In this document: piece by piece, positions 13,701-63,420 of the stretch
Layout: the number at the start of each line of letters is the position of its first letter
How positions within the stretch are numbered: position 1 is the first letter of the stretch
From: Octopus sinensis
Taxonomy: Eukaryota
Direction: 5' to 3'
DNA length: 64,000 nucleotides
Assembly (NCBI RefSeq): GCF_006345805.1
Contig: NC_043009.1
Span: forward strand, 5,208,001-5,272,000
The notes under the pieces: generated by a model
What the model was told of the DNA's origin: nothing
Databases searched by the model: none
What the model saw: the letters and a program-made list of their open reading frames with translations, nothing else
Translations under genes and position numbers: made by a program

Positions 13701-13866
13701 TATGTGTATATATCTGTCTCAATCTATTAATCTATTTATGTATCGATCTCTGTTCCCCCCTATATACAGTGAGAAAGAGAGAGGATGGACGGAGATAGAG
13801 AATGAAGTAGAGGGAAAAAAGAGATAAATAGATAGATATATAATTATACACATATTGACAGTATTT

Positions 13867-14161
13867 GGAGGCACATGACCTAGCACTGGACTCGCGGTCG
13901 AGGGATAGCGGGTTCAAATCTCAGACCGGGCGATGTGTGTGTTTATGAGCGAAACACCTAAGCTCCACGCGGCTTCGGCAGAAGGTAATGCCGAACTTCT
14001 GCTGACTCTTTCGCCACAACTTTCTCTCACTCTTTCCTCCTGCATCTAGCAGCTCACCTGCGATGGACTGGCGTCCCATCCAAGTGGGAAACCTATACGA
14101 CAAAGAAACCGGGAAACCGGCCCTTATGAGCCAGACATGGCTCGAGAAGGAATTAAAAAAA
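13867..14161 (+). mobile_element. SINE family B with 13-bp target site duplication
   Basis: tRNA-like head (small deletion in the A box), GGTTCAAATC B box; TSD ATATTGACAGTAT at 13852-13864 and 14162-14174; close to the copy at 62159. Confidence 0.93.
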
Positions 14162-17214: not shown

Positions 17215-17430
17215 AAATAAATTCTAATATATATCATAAGGCCTGCGGTTTTGCAATGAAACTTAGTAGATACCATCGATATCTGTACTTTACAGGTAAT
17301 ATAACTTATCGACCGCGGAAACACCAATTGCTGTTGACCTCCGTGATGTATGAATTCAGAACGTAAAAAGTCAGGGCAAATACCAGTACGCTTTACTTCC
17401 GACGCTGCAATGATCCTGCCAGCTCAGAAA
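17215..17430 (-). mobile_element. Degenerate SINE family A
   Basis: Remnants TTATCGACC, GAATTCAGAACGTA, CCTGCCAGCTC in family A order. Confidence 0.55.
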
Positions 17431-17443
17431 TCCATCAACGCTC

Positions 17444-17444
<1 letters not shown>

Positions 17445-17495
<51 letters not shown>

Positions 17496-17524
17496 TAATA
17501 AGGATAATAATAATAATAATGATG

Positions 17525-17585
<61 letters not shown>

Positions 17586-17614
17586 TAATAAGGATAATAA
17601 TAATAATAATGATG

Positions 17615-17666
<52 letters not shown>

Positions 17667-17700
17667 CAACAACAACAACAACAGCAATAATAATAATAGA
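17445..17700. repeat. (AAT)n array with a 90-bp higher-order duplication, ending in (AAC)n
   Basis: Block AATGATAATAAGGATAATAAT...GATGAT recurs at 17491 and 17581. Confidence 0.95.
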
Positions 17701-18010
17701 AGAAAGTAAAAAAAAATATAATCCTTAAAATTTGAAATAGGAATTATTAGGAGCATGCGAACAGTAAAGGTTGTACAATAATTGGTGCGTTGTGAACAGT
17801 AAGCCAAGATTTAGACAAATGGGTGAAAGAGATTGAAATGAAATGTCCGGTAGCGCTTTTACAGAAGGTTCATCTCTTAGGAACAGCAAGTATTATCAGG
17901 AGGCTTCTAAACATTTAAAAGCCAGCTGAAAACTTGTGGATACCTAAGGTTACCAGCTATCCAAATAATTCCCACCAGGAATAAGATCGAACCTGACCCA
18001 AACTAAAATA
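17700..18010 (+). mobile_element. R4/Dong-clade (REL endonuclease) LINE 3' fragment 1
   Basis: Hand translation IIGAL*TVSQDLDKWVKEIEMKCPVALLQKVHLLGTASIIRRLLNI*, homologous to the C-terminus of the 45340 element (IIVGALG...IQKIAILGTAHILRR). Confidence 0.8.
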
Positions 18011-20514: not shown

Positions 20515-20665
20515 ATAATCATAATAATATTAGTAAGAATCATCGACATCATCAGCAGCAACACAGCAGAAAATGGAGCAGAAGAAGAAGAAGAAAAGAA
20601 GAAGAAGAAGAAGAAGAAGAAGGAAAAGAAGAAGAAGAAGGAAGAGGAGGAGAAGAAGGAGGAGG

Positions 20666-20742
<77 letters not shown>

Positions 20743-21498
20743 AAGAAAAGAAGAAGAAGAAGAAGAAGGAGAAAAAGAAGAAGAAGAAGAAGAAGGAGGA
20801 GGAGGAGGAAGAAGAGGAGGAGAATAAGGAGGAGGAGACGAAGAAGAAGGAGGAAGAAGAGGAGGAGAAGAAGAAAAAGAAGAAGAAGAAGAAGAAGGAG
20901 AAAGAAGAAGAAGAAAAAGGAAGAAGAGGAGGAGAATAAGGAGGAGGAGACGAAGAAGAAGGAGGAAGAAGGGGAGGAGAAGAAGAAGGAGAAGAAGAAG
21001 AAGAAAAGAAGAAGATGAAGAAGAAGAGGAGGAAGAAGGAAAAGAAGACGAAGAAGAAGGAAGAGGAGGAGAAGAAGGAGGAGGAGAAGAAGAAGAAGAA
21101 GGAAAAAAGAAGAAGAAGAAGGAGGAAGAAGAGGAGGAGAATAAGGAGGAGGAGACGAATAAGAAAGAGGAAGAAGAGGAGGAGAAGAAGGAGGAGGAGG
21201 AGAAGGAGGAGGAGAAGAAGGAGGAGGAGAAGAAGAAGAACAAGAAAAAGAAGGAGGAGGAGAAGGAGGAGAGGAGGTGGAGGAGGTGAAGAGGAAGAGA
21301 AGACGAAAATAAGAAGGAGGAGGAGGAGGAGGAGGAAAATGATGAAGTTAATGACGGTGAAGAAAGGAACAAGCAAACAAATAATCCAGACAGAAAATAA
21401 TAAAAAAAAGGAAATAGTTTAAAAGAAAAAGTGAATACAATTGCTGCAGAGTAACCTGAGTTTTCTTGTCGCTGTTTTTACTGTCGTTGTTGTTGTTG

Positions 21499-21529
<31 letters not shown>

Positions 21530-21851
21530 TGATGATGGTATTGTTACTGACGTTGATGATGACGGAAACGATTATTAAGATAATAATTATAATGATGACG
21601 GTTGTGATGACGATCATGAAGATGATAATGATAAAGATAATGATGAGGATGATGACGATGACGATGACGATGACGATGATGAATGATGATGATGATTGAT
21701 GATGATGATGATGATGAGAGATGATGATGGTGATGATGGTATTGTTACTGACGTTGATGATGACGGAAACGATTATTAAGATAATAATTATAATGATGAC
21801 GGTTGTGATGACGATCATGAAGATGATAATGATAAAGATAATGATGAGGAT

Positions 21852-21886
<35 letters not shown>

Positions 21887-21905
21887 TGATGATGATGATG
21901 ATGAT

Positions 21906-21936
<31 letters not shown>

Positions 21937-26104: not shown

Positions 26105-26551
26105 AGGAAGAAAGAAGAATATTGCACGTGATTAAATGCTATAAGTTTAGGGAAAGCGGGAAATAGTGGACACTTGATATAGGCATTGACAATTTTTTTT
26201 GCCTACAATATTAATCATTATAAATATATATATATGTATATATCGATGCGTACATACATATATACATATATATTCAGACACATATGAAAATATACATGTA
26301 TACGCATATTTCTTTATTTCTTTTATGTTTCACCACAAAGGAGGTGGTCATGCTCATATATATATATATCAATAAAGAAATATATGTGTGTGTGAGTGTG
26401 CGTGTGTGAGTGTGCGTGTGTGAGTGTTTCAATATGTGTATATATGTGTGTATGTGTGTATGAAATACTTTGAAATACTTTGAAAGGTTTCGGCCATTAT
26501 TGGCCCAGGCCATGTCTAACTTAATAGCACCACCTGGTGAAGTCTTTAAAG

Positions 26552-29500
26552 TCAGAAGTTGGGCACTATGGCCCACTCAAGTAGAGAGTTATTGTTTACA
26601 GAGACATATCCGGGTGTAGGGGGTTTATCCGGGATTTCTTGAAGGAATCTGTCCAAAGACTTCTTGAACCCAATAGGGTCAGTTTCTGTTTTAATGTGTT
26701 TTGGTGTAATGTTAAAGAGAGCGGGGCCAATTGAGGTGAAATAATTGTGCCGTATTGTTGTTATGAGATGAGAGTGCGATTTTTGTTTTGGGCGGATGGC
26801 ACGGGGCCCAAGCCTTGGATGTACCTTAAAGGTGATGCCAACATCATTTGGGCAATGCTGATGGAATATTTTCCACATCATGCAGATGATGTAGCGCTCA
26901 CGACGACGTTGGAGAGAATAGAGTTTTACCTTTTCTAGCCGACCCCAATAGTCGAGGCCTGTCATGCCATCTATCTTTTTTGTGATTGCCCTTTGAGGTG
27001 CTTCAACTTTTATGATACCTTGTATTGTGTGGGGAGACCACAGTGGACAACAGTATTCAAGGTGGGGTCGGGCAAAAGTGGAGAAGAGAAGGATAATGGT
27101 GTGGATATCTCTCGACTGGAAAGTTCTGAGAATCCAGGAACACATTCTGCGGGCCATGTCAACTTTGGTGTTTATATGAGTGGCCCAGCTTACGTTGTTG
27201 TCCACAATTACTCCCAGTCTCTGATGTTGTTGGACGCCGCGAGAGTTTCACCTGAAGGAAGGGAGTATGGGAGTTTCAGGGCATCCTCTTTTCCAAAGTG
27301 GATTAGCTCAAATTTATCCTCGTTCAGCAGCATATTGTTTTTTTCTGCCCATTGGATAACAGCCAGTAGATCTGACTGAAGGCATGTCCGGTCACTCGCC
27401 TCATTTATGACCTTCTGTAGCTTGGAGTCATCTGCAAAGATTTTTATGTTGCTGTGCTTGATGATGTCATTAATGTCATTAATGTAAATGATGAAAAGAA
27501 GTGGGCCCAGCACAGTGCCTTGCGGAACGCCACTACTGACTTTGGCTGGGCTTGATTTTACCCCTTCAACTACAACATGTTGAGATCTATCTGTCAGGAA
27601 ACACTTAATCCATTTCAGTAACTTTCCAGAGACACCAATGTTGGATAGTTTTTTCAATAGGATCTTGTGATCGACCCTGTCGAAGGCCTTACTGAAATCA
27701 AGGTAGATGACATCGGTGTTGGAGCCCTCTCCCAAAGCTCTCAAAATGTCCTCAAAGTGATGCAGGAGCTGCGTTAGGCAGTCCCTTCCATTACGGAACC
27801 CATGTTGGTTGGAGATCAGCCGTCTGTTGCTTTCCAGAAATTGGGTTATTCGAGATCTCACCACCCTCTCAAATACCTTGATGATATGAGAGGTGAGTGA
27901 GATCGGACGGTAGTTCACTGCAAGGGACTTGCTTCCCTTTTTGAAAACTGGGACAACAGACTGGGACAGAAGGTTTTTTGGAATATAGCCAGCATCCAGT
28001 GAGTTTCTCCACAGATTAGCAAGGGGAGATGCAAGTTGGTGTCGACACACCTTCAGGACACAAGCAGGGAACCTATCGGGGCCTACTGCTGAATTGTGTT
28101 TTATCTCGTTTATCGCCGCTAAGACATTAGGGGCACTAAACGTTATGTCCGATATAGTGTGTTGGGGGTTGACATCACTGATACAGCCCAGATCGGCCAT
28201 ATCAGGATTGCTGAAAACAGAGCAGTATTGTTTCTGCAGTATCTCGGCCATGGATTTGGCATTATCTTGGAGAGTGCCAGTTTCGTCAATTAGAGGGCCT
28301 ACAGTGGAGACAGTGACCCTGCGTTTCCTCGCAAATGAAAAGAACACTTTGGGGTTGAGTTTGATTTTTTCAATGGCCCACTTCTCCTCAGCTGATCTTT
28401 GGTTATTGATGAGGGTCTTCATGCATTATTGGAGGTTATATTTTTTGGATTCAAGCAGTGCGATAGCCGTCGAATGTGTGTTGCTGTTGGCAGTACTTTA
28501 GTTTGTTAATTTTTTTGTTTGTTCTTTTTATTTTTCTGATAATGGTTTTTCTGTTTTGGGGGATTCTGCACTTTTTGTTCACAGGTCTTGGTGGGGAGTG
28601 TTTTGCACATATGTCTGTGACGGTGTCTACAAAGATCTGCCAAGATGTTTTATGGTTGGTGGAGATGTGTGTATGTGTAAAGGACCAGTCAACATTTGAT
28701 AGCTCGTTCCTGATTGCATCCCAGTTGGCTTTATGGAGATCCATGTTGTCAAATGGGTGGGCTGGAGGAAGGTCACTAGGATTAGCTTTCGGCTGGTGGA
28801 ATTTCATGTTACAGAGAACCATGTCATGGTCTGAAAGAAGGGTTTTTTCCACTGTAACGTTATGTATAGTGTTAGTGTGGTTACTAAACACTAGGTCCAA
28901 AATGTTCTGATGTCTTGTTGGTGCAAGGACAAGTTGGGACAAGAAAAACTCATTCGTAAAGTCGAAAAGTGCCTCTGCTGCTTCTTTGTCAGCGGTTGAG
29001 GCGGGAGTGCTTGGTTTCAAAGAGTTTGTAGTCCAGTCAACACAGGGTAGATTGAAGTCTCCCATCATGAGTATGTTGCTAGAATGGCACTGTTGAATAA
29101 AGCACTTAATGCTGTTGAGGCATTCTTTAAAGCACAGTATGGGTGTTTGGGGCGGCCTATAGAGCCCAATTACTGTCAGGTCATTGGCTTTGTTGTGCAC
29201 GGTGACTGATTCACAGTAGCCATTGGAGAATATACTATTTCCATCTGCCGTAAATGAATCATGCAGGAAAATGGCAGTTCCGCCCTTCCTCCTGCCGATA
29301 CGATCCGCGCGGATGGTTGTGAAATTCTTCACTCTCACTTCGGCTTCCAAGTGGGAGTTGTCAAGGTGGGTCTCAGTGAGAATGAAGAAAGGGATGTGGT
29401 GTGAATGGTTACCAACCCAGTCTTCAATGAATTGGACCTTCCATTTTTGTGCATTGATGGAAGGGCTGACACCTTGTGCATTGAGTAGGAATGTGGAGGT

Positions 29501-29680
29501 TAGTGTAGTGGCTGGTTTTGACTGTTGCAGGGAGCTTGGATTTTTTGTGTGTGTTAGTGGCAGCAATGTGGGGAATTGGTGCACTGGGGTAATAGCATAG
29601 GATGGTGTTGAGTGATGGCTAGAATGTTTTTGTGTATCTCTTTTGCCATGTTCAACATGGCTAAAAAAGAATTTTCCTGC
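26552..29680 (-). pseudogene. LINE ORF2: APE endonuclease + reverse transcriptase, disrupted
   Basis: APE motifs LLNAQG, LTETHL, IGLYRPP, MGDFN, ILDLVF, SDHD; RT motifs NYRPISLTS, QHGFR, LDFSKAFD, GVPQGTVLGP, FADD. Lesions: frameshift ~28475, in-frame TAA just before 28422, 1-nt deletion at ~27213 (RDLGV broken). Confidence 0.93.
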
Positions 29681-30782
29681 TTAGGGAGCAGTTTTTGGCT
29701 GGAGGTGTGGTTGCACTGTTGGATAGGGTTGTAGTTTCCACTTTTGTTGTTGTTGTTTTTGTGTCTTCCTGAAAAGACTGGACCAGCATTACTGCAGCAT
29801 GGTGTGTTTCTATTTTTATTGTTATTCAGGTTTGTGTGTTGGCTTGAGGCCCCGTTTCTGTTTGTGCGTCGGGTCCCTGGAAGATGAGTGAAGGGACAGT
29901 CACTCAGTAGACATGTTCTCTCACGTTGGGAATACTGGCAGATTTTGGGACTCCGAGTTGTGTGTGTTTTGAATTTCGATTTACTATTTGGTGGTGTTGA
30001 TGTTATTGTGGGATGCGTGCTTTGGCCTTGGCCGGTAGTGCGTCTAGTGCCGGGTAGATGCGTGAAGATGCAGTCACTATTTGTGCAGAGTCTCTGGCGC
30101 AGTGAATAGCGGCATATTTGGGGATTTCTTGTTTGTGCCGTGGGGGGCGCATTCTGCTTCCTATGTTTCTTTAAGTTTTTGTTACTGCAGTAGTATTGAG
30201 GTGGTGATGTGGGGGAGAGGGCAGTGGTTTCTTATTTGGTTTTCTGTCGGTATTTTTGGTGATAGAAGACGATGGTGGCAGCGGTGGTGATGATGATGAT
30301 GATAATTGTGGTGGTTGCTGTGAGAGCGGTGAAAAGATACTGGCATTTAGTGAATCGTCTAGTAAGCTAGAGTTGAGGAGTGGCTGTTGTTGTTCTTGTT
30401 GCTGTGGCTGTTGTTGTTGTTGTTGTGCCTGACCGATGTCAGGGTCAGCCATTGTGCTGGGAACCAGGAGTGGCTCATTCTGTTGTTGTTGTTGTTGTGG
30501 CTGCTGATTTTCTAGCTGTTGTTGTTCTTGAACTGTGAAAATATGTAGAAGCTTTTCATAATGGCCTCTTATCAGTTTGAAAGATACTTCGATATGTTTC
30601 AACTTGCTACGAATCTGTTTGACGGATCGTGTGTTGACCACTTGTGATGTTTTTTCGGCAATCTCATTCAAACACAAGACATTTAGATTTTCTGTTTGGG
30701 AAAGAGAGAGCCATGTGTTTATTAAAACATCAATTTCGTTATCAGACCAATTTCGTCTGTTGCAGGCCTGCAAGTTAGTCAT
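29554..30782 (-). CDS. LINE ORF1 (~409 aa if one frameshift is repaired): Myb/SANT-like domain, polyQ/P/S linker, two CCCH zinc fingers
   Basis: Track ORF 30171-30782 gives RRNWSDNEIDVLINTW...EIAEK...RSVKQIRSKLKHI. The -1 frame, open from 30231 to TAA at 29554-29556 (hand translated), contains CRYSLRQRLCTNSDCIFTH and CQYSQRERTCLLSDCPFTH. Confidence 0.75.
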
Positions 30783-31189
30783 GTTTGTTTTTCTTTTGTT
30801 TGTTTTCCTTTTGATTTTTGAAAATATATATATTCTTTCTTGGGAGTTAAAGAAGTGTATATATATATAAATGTTCTCTCTTAAGGGTGTGAGTTTTTGA
30901 TTATTTGGTTGTTTGAGGATATTAAAAGAAAAACAGTTGTATATAACAATTTGTAGTTAAATGAAAACGTACTTACGGGTTTGTAGGGAAACACGTGGTT
31001 ACAAATATATATATATATTTAAGGTCAGTTAGTTTTGAAGCTGTGTAGCTTGCTACTGACTTGGGAGAGAAACAAATAGACGTCCGTCCACTTCAACAGT
31101 TAATCCACATATATGTATGTATGTATGTATTACCTATGTATATTTATATGTATTTTACATCATTTTATAGTTTGAACATTTATCTATGT

Positions 31190-31920
31190 TTATGCATAAT
31201 CGCCATTTCGGTCGATGCATATTTGTAGGTGCTGGGGCAGTTGAGGAAGCGGACAGCCTCATCTTTCGCTCCATCGTCGTTGCTGAAGTGCGTTCCGGTC
31301 AAATGTTCTTTGAATTTAGGGAACATGTGGTTATCACTGGGTGCGAAGTCCGGATAATAAGGTGGGTTGCCGTTTATGGTCTTCCGTGAGTGTACGTGGA
31401 ACCCATCTTGCGCACAATTTCCGATATTGCAACTTTTCACTCAAAACCTTATGAATGGTGCTTCGGGATATCTCAGGAACCAAAATGCAGAGATCATCGA
31501 GAGTGGTCCGTTGATATTTACCCAGGATTTGCTCAACCTCCGCGACTGTCTCCTCGGAAATTAATGGTCGCTCGCTTCTTTCTTAGTCATGAATTTCCGT
31601 ACGACCAGCTGCAAACTCCCTACACCATTTGCGGATGTTTTTGACATACATGGACGACGCTCACTACACGTCCGTTAATTGGCGATGAATTTCAATCGGT
31701 GTAATGCTTTTTGCGTTAAAAAATCGAAAAAGTACACGAACTTCACACTTGGCGGTAGGGTTAATCGGGAGCTCCATCAGATACAACTGTGAAGCCAAGT
31801 CTGAAAAAGGCAGGCGCATGTACTGGCACAACAACTCCATCAGTGTTGCCAATAGCCACATGCACAGTCTCCCTGAGTTCCCAGTGCTTTGGAGACCTTA
31901 CTTTAGGGATTACCCTCGTA
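31190..31920 (-). mobile_element. Internally deleted mariner (Tc1/mariner) relic
   Basis: Left end TA-TACGAGGGTAATCCCTAAAGTAAGGTCT at ~31922; N-terminus KCEVRVLFRFFNAK..PIEIHRQL, ARWVP motif, PYYPDFAPSD (cf. YSPDLAPSD); right TIR not found. Confidence 0.9.
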
Positions 31921-33547: not shown

Positions 33548-34559
33548 GTGTGTATGGGAAGTATTTACTTTAAACAGCCCACTCTAATTGTTATATTAGA
33601 TGCAGAATATCTCCGTGTCATGAACTATCAAACTTCTGCTGTCGTTTGGTTGGAGTGGAGGATAGACAAATTAATATAGGCGCAATATTGCAGCCATATA
33701 ATTATGCTGTAAATACATATATATTTATTTATCTAAGTATGCATGGTTGTATGAATGCATGTCCGCTTATATCTGTCACACCACTCTCTAGCTATCTGTT
33801 TTCCTATCTATATCTATTTATACATAGAGAGAGAGAGAATGTGTGTGCGAGCCCATGTATGTAATTTAAAAACTTGCCAAAGCTATCAACAAAAACACTT
33901 CATAATGATTTGATTGGGGAACGTTTCTCGTCACAGCATCTAAATAAATAATATAATACCCTACAATCTCAATATGGAATTCGATTGAAGCTATTTCAAA
34001 TGAGATATATGTGTCTGCATATGTTAATGCGTGATTGTGTGTATGGGTGTGTGAGAGAGTGTATGTGTGTTAGTGTTAATGTGTGTATGTATGTGGAGTT
34101 AGTGTATGTGTGCGTTTGAAAATGTTAGGGAAAATGTTCGAATTGCTGTTGTGCGATAAAATGAAAAGCATCTAGTATACTTCCACAAACTCTCAAGCGG
34201 TTGCCGTCCCGATTTCGAGTTCTTACCAAGAAATGCTCATTCGAAAATATGATCAGTAGCATGGATGTGCAAAGGCTATAATACCTTTGACGAGAATCTT
34301 GGATACAAGAGCATAACTTTGTACTGTAAGTGAAAATTAAAAGACTATATGTACGGGAAATAAATAGAATCCTTCGATGTAGACGAAAACCTGTTAATTC
34401 ATGACGAAGTTGAACATCTTTACATTTCATCCCCTTAATATATAACTGCATGTGGATTGTTGGGGATTTTTACCCCAGTCTTCCTTTTCTCTTGGACATT
34501 CCTCTGTCTCTTGTTTTTGAAGAAGAGCATTGCTTCCTTTCCTTTCCTTCTTTTCGTTC

Positions 34560-34900
34560 CCTGAGAGTCTTTTAATACATTGCATGTTGGAGACTGACTG
34601 GGTGAACAATGCCTGTCATCGCCACAGATGGAGGAAGCAGGTTAAGGAGGGGATTGACACTTTTGAGAGAGCACGTATCCAGCATGAAGAACTTAGGCGG
34701 GCTGCGCGAAAGCGCACGGCTCGTATAGTGAATGGGGAAAGCTTGGTCTGCAATGTTTGCAGTCGTGTATGCTTGTCAAGAGCAGGGCTCATTAGCCACC
34801 AACGTAGCCGCAAATGCAAAATATAAGTTAGTCCTAGAGCGCACAATGTTCCTGAAGGTCGGCAATGGTCTTCCTTGGTCACGAGTGGACGGCCATCATC
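34560..34900 (+). mobile_element. RTE (BovB-like) LINE 3' fragment
   Basis: WRKQVKEGIDTFERAR...RRAARK...CNVCSRVCLSRAGLISHQR is the typical RTE ORF C-terminus with a C2H2-like motif; short 3' UTR ending CATCATCAT. Confidence 0.88.
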
Positions 34901-39614: not shown

Positions 39615-39875
39615 GTGGCGGCGCGTGGCTTAGTTATTAGGGTTTCGGCATCAGGATCATAAGAGTGTGGCTTCGATTCCTGGACCGGGCGACGCGTTGT
39701 GTTCTTGAGCAAAACACTTCATTTCACGTTGCTCCAGTCCACTCAACTGGCAAAAATGAGTAACGCTGCGATAGATTGGCGTCCTGTCCAGCTGGGGAAC
39801 ACATACGCCATTGAAACTGGGAAAACGGGCCGATGAGCCTGGCTAGGCTTTAAAAGGGCGCACAAAAATAAAATT
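39615..39875 (+). mobile_element. SINE family B variant 2
   Basis: GGCTTAGTTATTAG A box, GCTTCGATTCC B box; matches 16320-16577. Confidence 0.9.
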
Positions 39876-53942: not shown

Positions 53943-54599
53943 CATACACGGGTTCGTGTGTAGAAATGTGTGTGTTGTATATGAATAAATGAAAGAATGG
54001 AGTCGAACGAAGATGCTAACAAAATTCCTTTACTCTCGACACAAATTTCGATGATTGCCTACATGCTAACCAAAGCGATAATGAGTGTTTTTTTTTTAAA
54101 ATCCGTTAGAATCATTGACGTCAAAAAATGGATAGTAGGAGGAAGTAAAAATAGGTAGGGGACAGTATGTTTGCTGTATGTATGGAAATGCGTGGGTGTG
54201 TGCTTGTGTTAATGAGTGCGTGTGTTTGTGTGTGTGTATGTGTGTGTATATAACTGCATTTGTGTCTGTGTGTGTGATTGTGTGTGTGTGAGAGAGACAG
54301 ACGTCAAAGATAGGTAGTAGTAAGGGAAGATATAAAAGAGTAATAGGTAGGGAACAAGTGGAGAGGGAAGTGTACGTTGATTGAAAGAATGTTCGAAGGC
54401 TAAGGAAAGAATTTCTCTATAGCAGTGGGATGGACGTGAAGCTAATTGATGGTAACAACAATAAAGGTATTGTTGTCGGTGGTATTGCAGGTTGTAGTAC
54501 AATTAATAATACGAATAATAATAGAAATAGTGTAGTTGTTAGCGCTAATAGTAATAAAAACAACAATCATAACAATAAAAACTTCGTCTCGATCTCGGA

Positions 54600-55010: not shown

Positions 55011-55473
55011 TAAATGATAACGATAGTCACTGTGGTTTTAACAATTAGCTTCACGTCCACCCCACTGCTATAGAGAAATTCTTTCCTTAGCCTTCGAACA
55101 TTCTTTCAATCAACGTACACTTCCCTCTCCACTTGTTCCCTACCTATTACTCTTTTATATCTTCCCTTACTACTACCTATCTTTGACGTCTGTCTCTCTG
55201 TCACACACGCAATCACACACACAGACACAAATCCAGTTATATACACACACATACACACACACAAACACACGCACTCATTAACACAAGCACACACCCACGC
55301 ATTTCCATACATACAGCGAACATACAGTCCCCTACCTATTTTTACTTCCTCCTACTATCCATTTTTTGACGTCAATGCTTCTAACGGATTTTTAAAAAGA
55401 AACACTCATTATCGCTTTGGTTACCATGTAGGCAATCATCGAAATTTTTGTTTGTCTTGTTCTCGAGAGAGGC

Positions 55474-62158: not shown

Positions 62159-62464
62159 TGGAGGCACATGGCCTAGTGGTTAGAGCAGCGGACTCGCGGT
62201 CGAGAGATCGCGGGTTCGAATCTCAGACCGGGCGATGTGTGTGTTTATGAGCAAAACACCTAAGCCCCACGCGGCTCCGGCAGAAGTTAATAGCGAAACT
62301 TCTGCTGACTCTTTCGCCACAACTTTCTCTCACTCTTTCCTCCTGCATCTTGCAGCTCACCTGTGACGGACCGGCGTCCCGTTCAGGTGGGCAACCTATC
62401 CACCAAGAAACCGGGAAACCGGCCCTTATGAGCCGGGCATGGTTCGAGAAGGAACAAACAACAA
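62159..62464 (+). mobile_element. SINE family B, full length, young, 13-bp TSD, (CAA)n tail
   Basis: Intact A box (GGCCTAGTGGTTAG) and B box (GGTTCGAATC); TSD CAGTTACTTCATG at 62146-62158 and 62465-62477. Confidence 0.95.
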
Positions 62465-63220: not shown

Positions 63221-63420
63221 GTGGAGACGCAATGGCTCAGTGGCTAGGGCAGCGGACTCGCGGTTGTAAGAGCGCGGTTTCGATTCCCAGACCGGGCATC
63301 GTGAGTGTTTATTGACCAAAGTCACCTAAGCTCTACAAGGCTCCGGCGGGGAAGAGGGGTGAGCCCCGCTGTACTCTTTCACCACAACTTTCTTTCAATC
63401 TTTCTTCCCACTTCTGTCAC
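63221..63420 (+). mobile_element. SINE family B-related, 3'-truncated
   Basis: GGCTCAGTGGCTAGGGCAGCGGACTCGCGG head, GGTTTCGATTCC B box, CACCTAAGCTC body. Confidence 0.8.

Follow-up and report, generated by a model that had tools for sequence, protein, structure and literature searches.

The LINE copy and its features

The window analysed here, a 64-kb stretch (64,000 nucleotides, nt) of Octopus sinensis contig NC_043009.1 (positions 5,208,001 to 5,272,000), carries on its minus strand a decayed CR1-like long interspersed nuclear element (LINE). The subject of this report is the first open reading frame (ORF1) of that element, which is predicted to join a Myb/SANT-like domain of the trihelix type to a low-complexity linker, two CCCH fingers and a C-terminal amphipathic helix. 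The original prediction, made from the letters of the window, had placed a LINE ORF1 of unusual makeup at 29554-30782, and this interval proved to be exactly the minus-strand ORF1 of a LINE that encodes an apurinic-type endonuclease (APE) and a reverse transcriptase (RT). The features of the copy, whose extent was obtained by blastn of the window against related loci and by Pfam searches of the ORF2 pieces, are as follows.

26457..30804, minus strand: whole decayed CR1-like LINE copy, ~4.3 kb
30171..30782, minus strand: ORF1 frame A, 203 residues, with start codon, Myb/SANT-like domain, Q-rich tract, S/P-rich linker and premature stop
30531..30752, minus strand: Myb/SANT-like three-helix domain (Pfam PF13837 type)
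30381..30530, minus strand: Q-rich low-complexity tract, (CAA/CAG)n-encoded
30171..30231, minus strand: interval bounding the one-base (-1) frame change in ORF1 (from the opening of frame B at 30231 to the stop of frame A at 30171)
30037..30114, minus strand: CCCH finger 1 (C-x8-C-x4-C-x3-H) and LPGTRRT
29863..29940, minus strand: CCCH finger 2 (C-x8-C-x4-C-x3-H) and LPGTRRT
29611..29676, minus strand: C-terminal amphipathic helix of ORF1, ENSFLAMLNMAKEIHKNILAIT
29554..29556, minus strand: ORF1 stop codon, preceded by ...PHCCH (the related locus L002 ends in ...PQCWH and stop, L008 in ...PQCCH and stop)
28451..29584, minus strand: ORF2 piece 1, APE, a frame without ATG (Pfam Exo_endo_phos_2, E 6e-14)
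27208..28422, minus strand: ORF2 piece 2, RT, in another frame (Pfam RVT_1, E 6e-31)
26552..27205, minus strand: ORF2 piece 3, C-terminal region, in yet another frame (tblastn 66% identity to L001, 52% to L003)
26457..26551, minus strand: 3' untranslated region (UTR), with the conserved block GTGGTGCTATTAAGTTAGACATGGCCTGGGCC, then two copies of the 10-nt unit TTCAAAGTAT, without poly(A)

The 5' limit of the element (30804) is the point at which DNA homology to L002 starts, and the 3' limit (26457) is the end of the terminal direct repeat. ORF1 lies on the same strand as APE and RT and directly upstream of them, and the DNA homology to L002 runs unbroken from ORF1 into ORF2. Translation of the minus strand between 26,000 and 31,000 in three frames places the ATG of frame A at 30782 and its stop at 30173-30171, and frame B, which is -1 relative to frame A, is open from 30231 down to the stop at 29556-29554. 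The copy is a dead insertion in which ORF1 and ORF2 are both frame-broken, the latter across three frames, and no second copy of the LINE was found within the 64-kb window. The pieces of ORF1 were searched separately.

Domains of ORF1

The N-terminus of frame A, whose opening stretch is MTNLQACNRRNWSDNEIDVLINTWLSLSQTENLNVLCLNEIAEKTSQVVNTRSVKQIRSKLKHIEVSFKLIRGHYEKLLHIFTV, reads MTNLQACNRRNWSDNEIDVLINTW...EIAEK...RSVKQIRSKLKHI, a pattern in which the original prediction had recognized a Myb/SANT-like DNA-binding domain. Analysis of the window piece with Pfam returned Myb_DNA-bind_4 at E 1.4e-5 and 25.8 bits, just below the gathering score of 27. This narrow shortfall, taken together with a profile search of PDB sequences that returned just weak GCN4-like coiled-coil matches (E at least 0.13) and with Foldseek E-values that are not significant, could be read to mean that the block is merely a helical or coiled-coil segment. 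We judge this to be very improbable, for two siblings pass the same Pfam threshold (P0027 at 31.7 bits and L002 at 27.3 bits), and the profile and column-by-column comparisons described below point to the Myb_DNA-bind_4 family. A copy from Argonauta gave no direct Pfam Myb_DNA-bind_4 match.

An exhaustive HMMER search (phmmer) with the N-terminal 86 residues produced seven matches, three of them short ORFs (P0027, P0029 and P0030) that clearly contain the same domain followed by a Q run, and four of them long fish proteins built of TINF2_N and five to seven Pfam Myb_DNA-bind_4 repeats (phmmer E 9e-7 to 7e-4). These fish repeat proteins are the closest non-LINE relatives found (~30% identity), a similarity that says nothing about the donor of the domain. 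The original prediction had proposed capture of a Harbinger or host module, with target-site selection or autoregulation as possible roles, and these may be kept as conjectures. When a profile of the ORF1 domain was run against them, all of the matched stretches (22/22) fell on Pfam-annotated Myb_DNA-bind_4 repeats, and an hhalign comparison of six ORF1 domains with 15 of the annotated repeats gave a probability of 96.5% (E 7e-10, 67 columns). In the joint alignment the first helix (WSDxE...W) and the third helix (R(S/T)xxQ(I/C)xxK(L/I)K) are in register, so that the W...W spacing and the third-helix motif match column by column, and W12 and W24 are nearly invariant. AlphaFold2 (AF2), supplied with the domain alignment, returned a model with a mean confidence (pLDDT) of 82 and helices at residues 14-30, 35-49 and 54-73, with a fourth helix at 75-84, in keeping with the family's bundle of three helices that has conserved aromatics in helix 1 and a basic recognition helix 3. 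The Foldseek list for this model is headed by GT-1, Myb-like and homeodomain folds (E 0.5-2, not significant), and the trihelix domain of Arabidopsis GT-1 (2ebi, 2jmw) stands at ranks 2-3 with a TM score of ~0.5, likewise not significant. From the sibling Pfam scores, the hhalign result and the three-helix model we conclude that the N-terminal block is a predicted Myb/SANT-like domain of the trihelix (PF13837) type, for which DNA binding is predicted.

The domain is followed by a low-complexity linker. A Q run stands after the domain in all octopus-type copies (5/5), and the Argonauta copies read poly-N at that place; because of this difference, the tract is not conserved as glutamine. The ratio of nonsynonymous to synonymous differences per site (pN/pS) in the linker is 0.78, over just 22 codons, and thus nearly neutral. 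Of the prion-like polyQ linker that had been proposed, the Q-rich tract and the S/P-rich stretch behind it are present as described, but the tract is better viewed as (CAA)n-type low-complexity sequence that reads Q or N and evolves at a near-neutral rate.

Frame B supplies the C-terminal half of ORF1. It contains both copies of C-x8-C-x4-C-x3-H, each followed by LPGTRR, that the original prediction had noticed in a frame missed by its ORF list, and their ligands are conserved in homologues. The core of finger 1, CRYSLRQRLCTNSDCIFTH, occupies 30114..30058 and that of finger 2, CQYSQRERTCLLSDCPFTH, occupies 29940..29884. A six-frame search of the window for C-x7-8-C-x4-5-C-x3-H yielded 7 matches, of which 5 are CVCVCV artefacts of (TG)n and the remaining 2 are the fingers, compared with a mean of 0.17 matches in block-wise shuffled sequence. 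In a gap-free alignment of nine finger units from seven loci, the sole invariant columns are C7, C16, C21 and H25, the four presumptive ligands of the pattern. Since the two finger units of the window are ~68% identical in DNA over 97 nt, they are taken to represent an old internal tandem duplication. Behind the fingers, the C-terminal helix could be aligned among the Myb-type loci L002, L008, L001 and L012, and its counterpart to the window stretch NSFLAMLNMAKE, the motif DFLKHLxxMK, occurs in the PHD-type or 5'-cut loci L003, L004, L005, L007 and L011. For the CCCH half, AF2 run on a single sequence gave an unreliable model (pLDDT 44.7), in which the helix at 153-176 was the sole confident element.

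Related loci, sister elements and the role proposed for ORF1

Neither the N-terminal 86 residues nor the CCCH half gave a match in a word-indexed protein database; most of the ORF1 pieces have no gene call in the assemblies they come from. With the APE piece as query, 26 homologues were returned, and the contigs around the best ones were examined, as were those of the short ORFs P0027, P0029 and P0030. A profile scan of JGI metagenome contigs with the N-terminal domain detected no relative. The Myb-like domain was found in five loci besides the window (L002, L008, L009, L010 and L012), which are listed here together with L001.

L002: APE 63% and RT 76% identical to the window; domain, Q run, one truncated and one intact CCCH finger, helix, APE-RT
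L008: ORF1 block only; domain, one finger, C-terminal helix
L009: ORF1 block only; domain, Q run, then unrelated sequence
L010: ORF1 block only; domain, two decayed fingers
L012 (Argonauta hians): domain, poly-N linker, both fingers and helix in one frame; family hidden Markov model E 3.5e-12 for the domain
L001 (Argonauta hians): APE 50% and RT 58% identical to the window; two CCCH fingers, helix

The L002 domain is 54% identical to that of the window over 83 residues (tblastn E 5e-30), and the DNA homology extends from window position 30804 to the end of the L002 contig. Counting the window, CCCH fingers follow the domain in 5/6 of the domain-bearing loci, L009 being interrupted after its Q run, and a homologous APE-RT follows the ORF1 block in the window, L002 and L012. 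The Myb-like domain was looked for in L001 and was not found there. Comparison of the two Argonauta hians copies, which lie on different scaffolds of GCA_054771915.1, is informative in this respect: L001 4926-8869 and L012 3932-7869 are 99.1% identical over 3.9 kb, and L012 reaches further 5'. Since this nearly identical copy extends 5' and has the Myb-like domain, L001 is merely 5'-truncated and the ORF1 of the family is a single ORF; the one stop of L012 is private to that copy, L001 having a tyrosine codon at its position. The same 99.1% identity indicates that the family appears to have been very recently active in Argonauta hians. The 5' block is therefore present in other copies, L012 among them, and is not peculiar to the window.

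These comparisons leave a negligible probability that the Myb-like ORF comes from some other gene or transposon (a host exon, say, or the Myb-like partner of a Harbinger element), a piece of which lies by chance beside a 5'-truncated LINE: frames A and B of the window do differ, frame A has its own stop and the word-indexed searches with either half were empty, but the domain precedes the fingers in L002, L008, L010 and L012, which come from different samples and share 29-54% domain identity, a single frame of L012 holds everything, no start codon precedes the fingers in frame B, and the loci yielded APE and RT alone, with no DDE transposase seen.

Several observations on individual loci are recorded here in their own right. 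In L008 (Logan SRR29346471, 1-4569), an intact APE-RT ORF of 1093 residues begins within ~20 nt of the stop of the decayed Myb-CCCH ORF1. This downstream ORF2 belongs to an unrelated LINE lineage, its RT being 32% identical to that of the window and its APE giving no match, and the locus may reflect genuine ORF1/ORF2 recombination, the nesting of one insertion in another, or a chimera made in assembly. As the last two are no less likely than the first, L008 was not used as a case of ORF1 exchange between LINE lineages. In L009 (~520-1130), the Myb domain and Q run give way to an ORF (...GDTLILDKHLLAFRWRCSFRIYIAKNLKNMAEDYY...) with a visual likeness to part of a piggyBac-type transposase; it has probably inserted into the LINE. 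ENA 'metagenome' assemblies are the source of several other relatives.

The 3' ends of these elements are without poly(A) and consist of two copies of a 9-10 nt unit, (TTCAAAGTAT)x2 in the window, (ATCTAAGTGT)x2 in L001 and (ACCCAAGTA)x2 in L003. Ahead of this lineage-specific unit, the 32-nt 3' UTR block is identical in the window and in Argonauta (L001 8800-8872, L012 7800-7872), between which the proteins are 50-66% identical; RNAalifold found one compensatory pair in it. The block is probably the tail recognized by the ORF2 protein (ORF2p). Because of the form of the 3' end and the PHD-type ORF1 of the sister elements, the evidence points to membership of the CR1/L2 group.

The sister elements L003, L004 and L005, whose APE is 37-42% identical to that of the window, have an ORF1 with three CCCH fingers and the DFLKHLxxMK helix. 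Their last finger is C-x8-C-x4-C-x3-H followed by (I/L)(K/R)(G/D)T. L003 and L004 start with a PHD finger, whose C4HC3 signature is complete in L003 and whose scores in Pfam stay below threshold. L007 and L011, both of which are 5'-cut, have the C-terminal helix as well. A BLASTP comparison of the window from finger 2 through the helix with the L004 ORF1 (finger 3 to helix) gave a collinear match at E 6e-4, which is modest evidence but stronger than that of the profile comparison given below. These results suggest that the CCCH fingers and helix form a clade-wide core on which the N-terminal module has been swapped. The Myb lineage (window, L002 and Argonauta) would then differ from its sisters twice, with a Myb-like domain in place of the PHD finger and with the third finger doubled in place of three different fingers. 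Since the sisters carry CCCH fingers and helix behind a PHD finger, the novelty would lie in the exchange of PHD for Myb on a CCCH-type core. As an observation apart, the PHD and CCCH LINE L004 (GCA_024449665.1) has an intact ORF1 of 362 residues, and in the cluster of P0003 and the L004 assembly one mate is named 'MAG: reverse transcriptase family protein [Gammaproteobacteria bacterium]' (MCP4492174.1), which looks like animal DNA binned into a bacterial metagenome-assembled genome (MAG).

Substitution patterns across the element lineages were compared part by part. For the Myb domain, pN is 0.27 against a pS of 0.79 between the window and L002, and over the comparisons made pN ranges from 0.27 to 0.42 and pS from 0.70 to 0.95; the exception is the closely related decayed pair L009/L010, with a pN of 0.28 and a pS of 0.35. 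The pN/pS of the fingers is 0.24-0.45 (0.24 for finger 1 and 0.31 for finger 2, each between the window and L002) and that of the C-terminal helix is 0.27-0.40, values to be read with synonymous sites near saturation between element lineages (pS 0.6-0.95). With the exception of L009/L010, the Myb domain, the fingers and the helix appear to have been kept under purifying selection across lineages.

The explanation that we favour as a whole, and hold to be probable with moderate confidence, is that the ORF1 of the living element would encode one protein (ORF1p) of ~380-400 residues with four parts: an N-terminal Myb/SANT-like, trihelix-type domain of three helices, a fast-evolving low-complexity linker from a (CAA)n-type tract, two Nab2-like CCCH fingers that would have arisen by duplication of one finger, and a C-terminal amphipathic helix. 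Fingers and helix would be the ancestral core common to the sister elements, which have a PHD finger in the Myb-like slot. The functions proposed follow the analogy of ORF1 proteins from other LINEs: the CCCH fingers may bind the single-stranded RNA of the element itself, and the C-terminal helix may drive self-association, leading to an ORF1p that coats its transcript. The N-terminal module may in turn be an exchangeable slot that tethers the ribonucleoprotein (RNP), through DNA or chromatin, to the site of integration or its vicinity, and it would be filled by a histone-tail reader (PHD) in the sisters and by a DNA- or histone-binding Myb/SANT fold here. The main argument for a tether is that PHD and Myb/SANT folds alternate at the same position. 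A bolder form of this proposal, which we put forward tentatively and regard as rather doubtful, is that the N-terminus of ORF1p serves in this CR1-like clade as an exchangeable address module (PHD, or Myb/SANT-like in octopods) that would steer the RNP to particular sequences or chromatin, with targeting carried out by ORF1p and not by ORF2, and that the CCCH core would define an uncatalogued ORF1 type.

Several results weigh against this explanation. Foldseek of the AF2 model of the N-terminal domain found nothing significant in the PDB (best E 0.55). Curated CCCH models remained sub-threshold for the fingers, the best being Pfam zf-CCCH_2 with 16.9 bits against a cut-off of 25.8, and a profile search of PDB sequences with the fingers gave Nab2 fingers as its best, not significant, match (E 0.48). 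An hhalign comparison of the C-terminal halves of Myb-type and PHD-type ORF1 aligned the finger alone, at a probability of 35% and E 4e-4. The direction of the exchange, from PHD to Myb, is taken from the wider distribution of PHD reported in the literature and not from a rooted tree. Folds of the SANT type can have histone tails or proteins, in place of DNA, as their ligands, and for ORF1 the binding of DNA, RNA and zinc is in each case a prediction. The domain might equally well act in transcribing the element, or have no part in targeting.

The strongest alternative accepts the architecture as real and denies the N-terminal domain the part of an RNP tether; the domain would instead regulate the transcription of its own element, recruit a host chromatin or nuclear-import factor, or act as a non-specific chaperone surface. 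Myb_DNA-bind_4 and SANT folds are generally known in all of these roles, and the third helix of the domain runs into a long amphipathic helix with a weak likeness to GCN4-type coiled coils (E 0.13, not significant). Against this stands the PHD finger in the slot of the sisters, a chromatin reader, which favours contact with chromatin or DNA although it does not separate targeting from regulation. We regard this alternative as possible, if on the unlikely side, and retain the tethering slot as the preferred explanation.

The frame change within ORF1 raises the further question of whether the Myb-polyQ and CCCH parts are separate products, or are joined by programmed -1 ribosomal frameshifting. 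The frame of the fingers is indeed -1 relative to that of the Myb domain in both the window and L008. However, the relations differ from copy to copy: L002 has the start of its first finger in the Myb frame, with one stop ahead of it, L008 has an additional stop immediately ahead of its finger, and in L012 everything from the Myb-like domain to the helix follows the ATG in one frame, with one stop, between the fingers. As frame relations vary among copies, L012 is single-framed and the ORF2 of the window is broken likewise, the frame change in the window copy is most simply read as ordinary decay and not as a designed feature, and two-part expression of this kind seems to us highly improbable. 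The shift most likely sits in the linker, a microsatellite-like tract that is prone to insertions and deletions. A frameshift had been placed at ~30176-30180; this lies inside the permitted interval of 30171-30231, within which the exact base cannot be singled out.

A separate observation concerns the junction of the two ORFs. In every copy examined (window 29457-29700 on the minus strand, L001, L002, L003 and L012), the ORF2 frame has no ATG ahead of the endonuclease, and ORF2 is already open in another frame where it overlaps or abuts the ORF1 stop. In L003 the ORF1 ends in ...ATGTGA and ORF2 begins inside that string. The missing ATG, together with this overlap or abutment, suggests that translation of ORF2 in the clade may be unconventional (reinitiation or similar).

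Surroundings of the element and comparison with known systems

Microsatellites of (TA)n, (CA)n and (CTAT)n are highly abundant in the window as a whole, and it contains further repeats that we list as observed. Directly 5' of the LINE, at 31180-31861 on the minus strand, short ORFs include a motif (...PPYYPDFAPSDNHMFPKFKEHLTGTHF...) that recalls the C-terminus of a mariner/Tc1 transposase; this is a visual impression, and Pfam returned no match at E <= 0.01. At 34530-34826 on the plus strand, an ORF of 98 residues has a C2H2-like finger at its end, CNVCSRVCLSRAGLISHQRS (Pfam zf-met below cut-off at E 0.0012), and resembles the C-terminal end of an ORF2 from a different, unrelated retrotransposon. 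The four members of repeat family D18 (13866-13946, 39625-39705, 62168-62248 and 63232-63312; 62-81% identity) have a tRNA-like head, GGTTCGAATC.., with a box-B-like motif, and are probably copies of a tRNA-derived short interspersed nuclear element; ARAGORN found no intact tRNA in them. Other dispersed families are D17/D20 (7051.., 10498.., 22485.., 24501..) and D19 (5686.., 43207..). A 410-nt inverted repeat, I1, has its arms at 54039-54448 and 55042-55451, 593 nt apart and 97% complementary, and may represent a foldback element or the terminal inverted repeats of a DNA transposon. Long purine-rich arrays of 9-nt or 3-nt period, with (GAA)n, (GAG)n and (ATA)n, occupy 17398-17737 and 20556-21919 (families D4, D8, D11 and D14).

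Among known systems, the PHD-type ORF1 of CR1/L2 LINEs (Type III, Khazina & Weichenrieder; Kapitonov & Jurka 2003) stands closest to the ORF1 of the window. Both lie upstream of APE-RT and offer a small N-terminal module for contact with chromatin or DNA, and the sisters L003 and L004, which are of this type, have the CCCH finger and C-terminal helix in common with the window element. The window element differs in that it has a Myb/SANT-like domain for the PHD finger, lacks fingers 1 and 2 of the sisters and has their third finger duplicated. Pfam searches of both ORF1 halves gave no RRM, CCHC, Transposase_22, PHD or SGNH esterase, and the ORF1 would thus fall outside types I-IV and be placed by that scheme in type V, 'unclassified'. 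The Gag-like CCHC ORF1 (Type I, Jockey-like) and the L1-type ORF1 (coiled coil, RRM and C-terminal domain) resemble it as presumed RNA-coating, self-associating partners of ORF2p, and are set apart from it by the domains that Pfam did not find in the window ORF1, namely RRM, CCHC knuckle, Transposase_22 and esterase.

In R2 elements an N-terminal zinc-finger/Myb region, and in the telomere-specific LINEs TRAS/SART a Myb-like domain, binds target DNA and directs site-specific integration. These regions provide a functional precedent for tethering by a Myb-type helix-turn-helix fold in the protein of a non-LTR retrotransposon, one lacking long terminal repeats (LTR). In these elements, however, the domain belongs to the RT-containing protein (the single ORF of R2, ORF2 of TRAS), whereas here it belongs to ORF1; their domains are canonical Myb repeats, whereas that of the window is of the trihelix/Myb_DNA-bind_4 type; and R2 uses a restriction-like endonuclease. 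By sequence profile, the domain belongs to the same family as the trihelix/GT-factor/MSANTD-like domains and the Myb-like partners of PIF/Harbinger elements, from which it differs in being LINE-encoded and fused to CCCH fingers. No Harbinger/DDE transposase was called in the domain-bearing loci, in which terminal inverted repeats were not specifically searched.

The tandem CCCH fingers of Nab2/ZC3H14, which are the best, sub-threshold match in Pfam and in the PDB, resemble those of the window in the C-x4-C-x3-H spacing and the CxFTHL motif, and differ in their first spacer, which is x5 there and x8 here. Fingers of the Nab2/ZC3H14 type bind single-stranded RNA. Since the element is without a poly(A) tail, a Nab2-like preference for poly(A) is not implied.

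A survey of 'Jockey superfamily' ORF1 proteins lists RRM, CCHC, coiled coil/CTD (C-terminal domain), PHD, esterase and zinc finger/leucine zipper among their parts, and the words CCCH, Myb and SANT are absent from it (Metcalfe & Casane 2014, PMC4120745). Modular exchange of ORF1 domains is a pattern described in the same paper (PMC4120745). Such exchange is in itself a well-established phenomenon. Full-text literature searches, whose scope did not extend to the repeat libraries Repbase and Dfam, returned no description of an ORF1 with Myb/SANT or CCCH, and a consensus with this ORF1 may already lie unannotated in a repeat library. The suggestion of an unrecognized ORF1 type consequently holds to the extent that no published entry was found, and has to be narrowed in that the CCCH block is shared with PHD-type sister LINEs.

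With the CCCH core and the Myb/SANT-like domain, two modules would be added to the published building blocks of ORF1. ORF1 proteins are the least understood component of LINEs. The alternation of PHD and Myb-like modules amounts to a natural swap experiment on the N-terminus, which would bear, for example, on the part of ORF1p in the choice of integration site or chromatin, and the near-identical copies of Argonauta hians make it likely that there is an intact element open to testing. Since cephalopod genomes are repeat-rich and LINE activity in the octopus brain has been a subject of discussion, well-annotated LINE families of cephalopods would also be of practical value.

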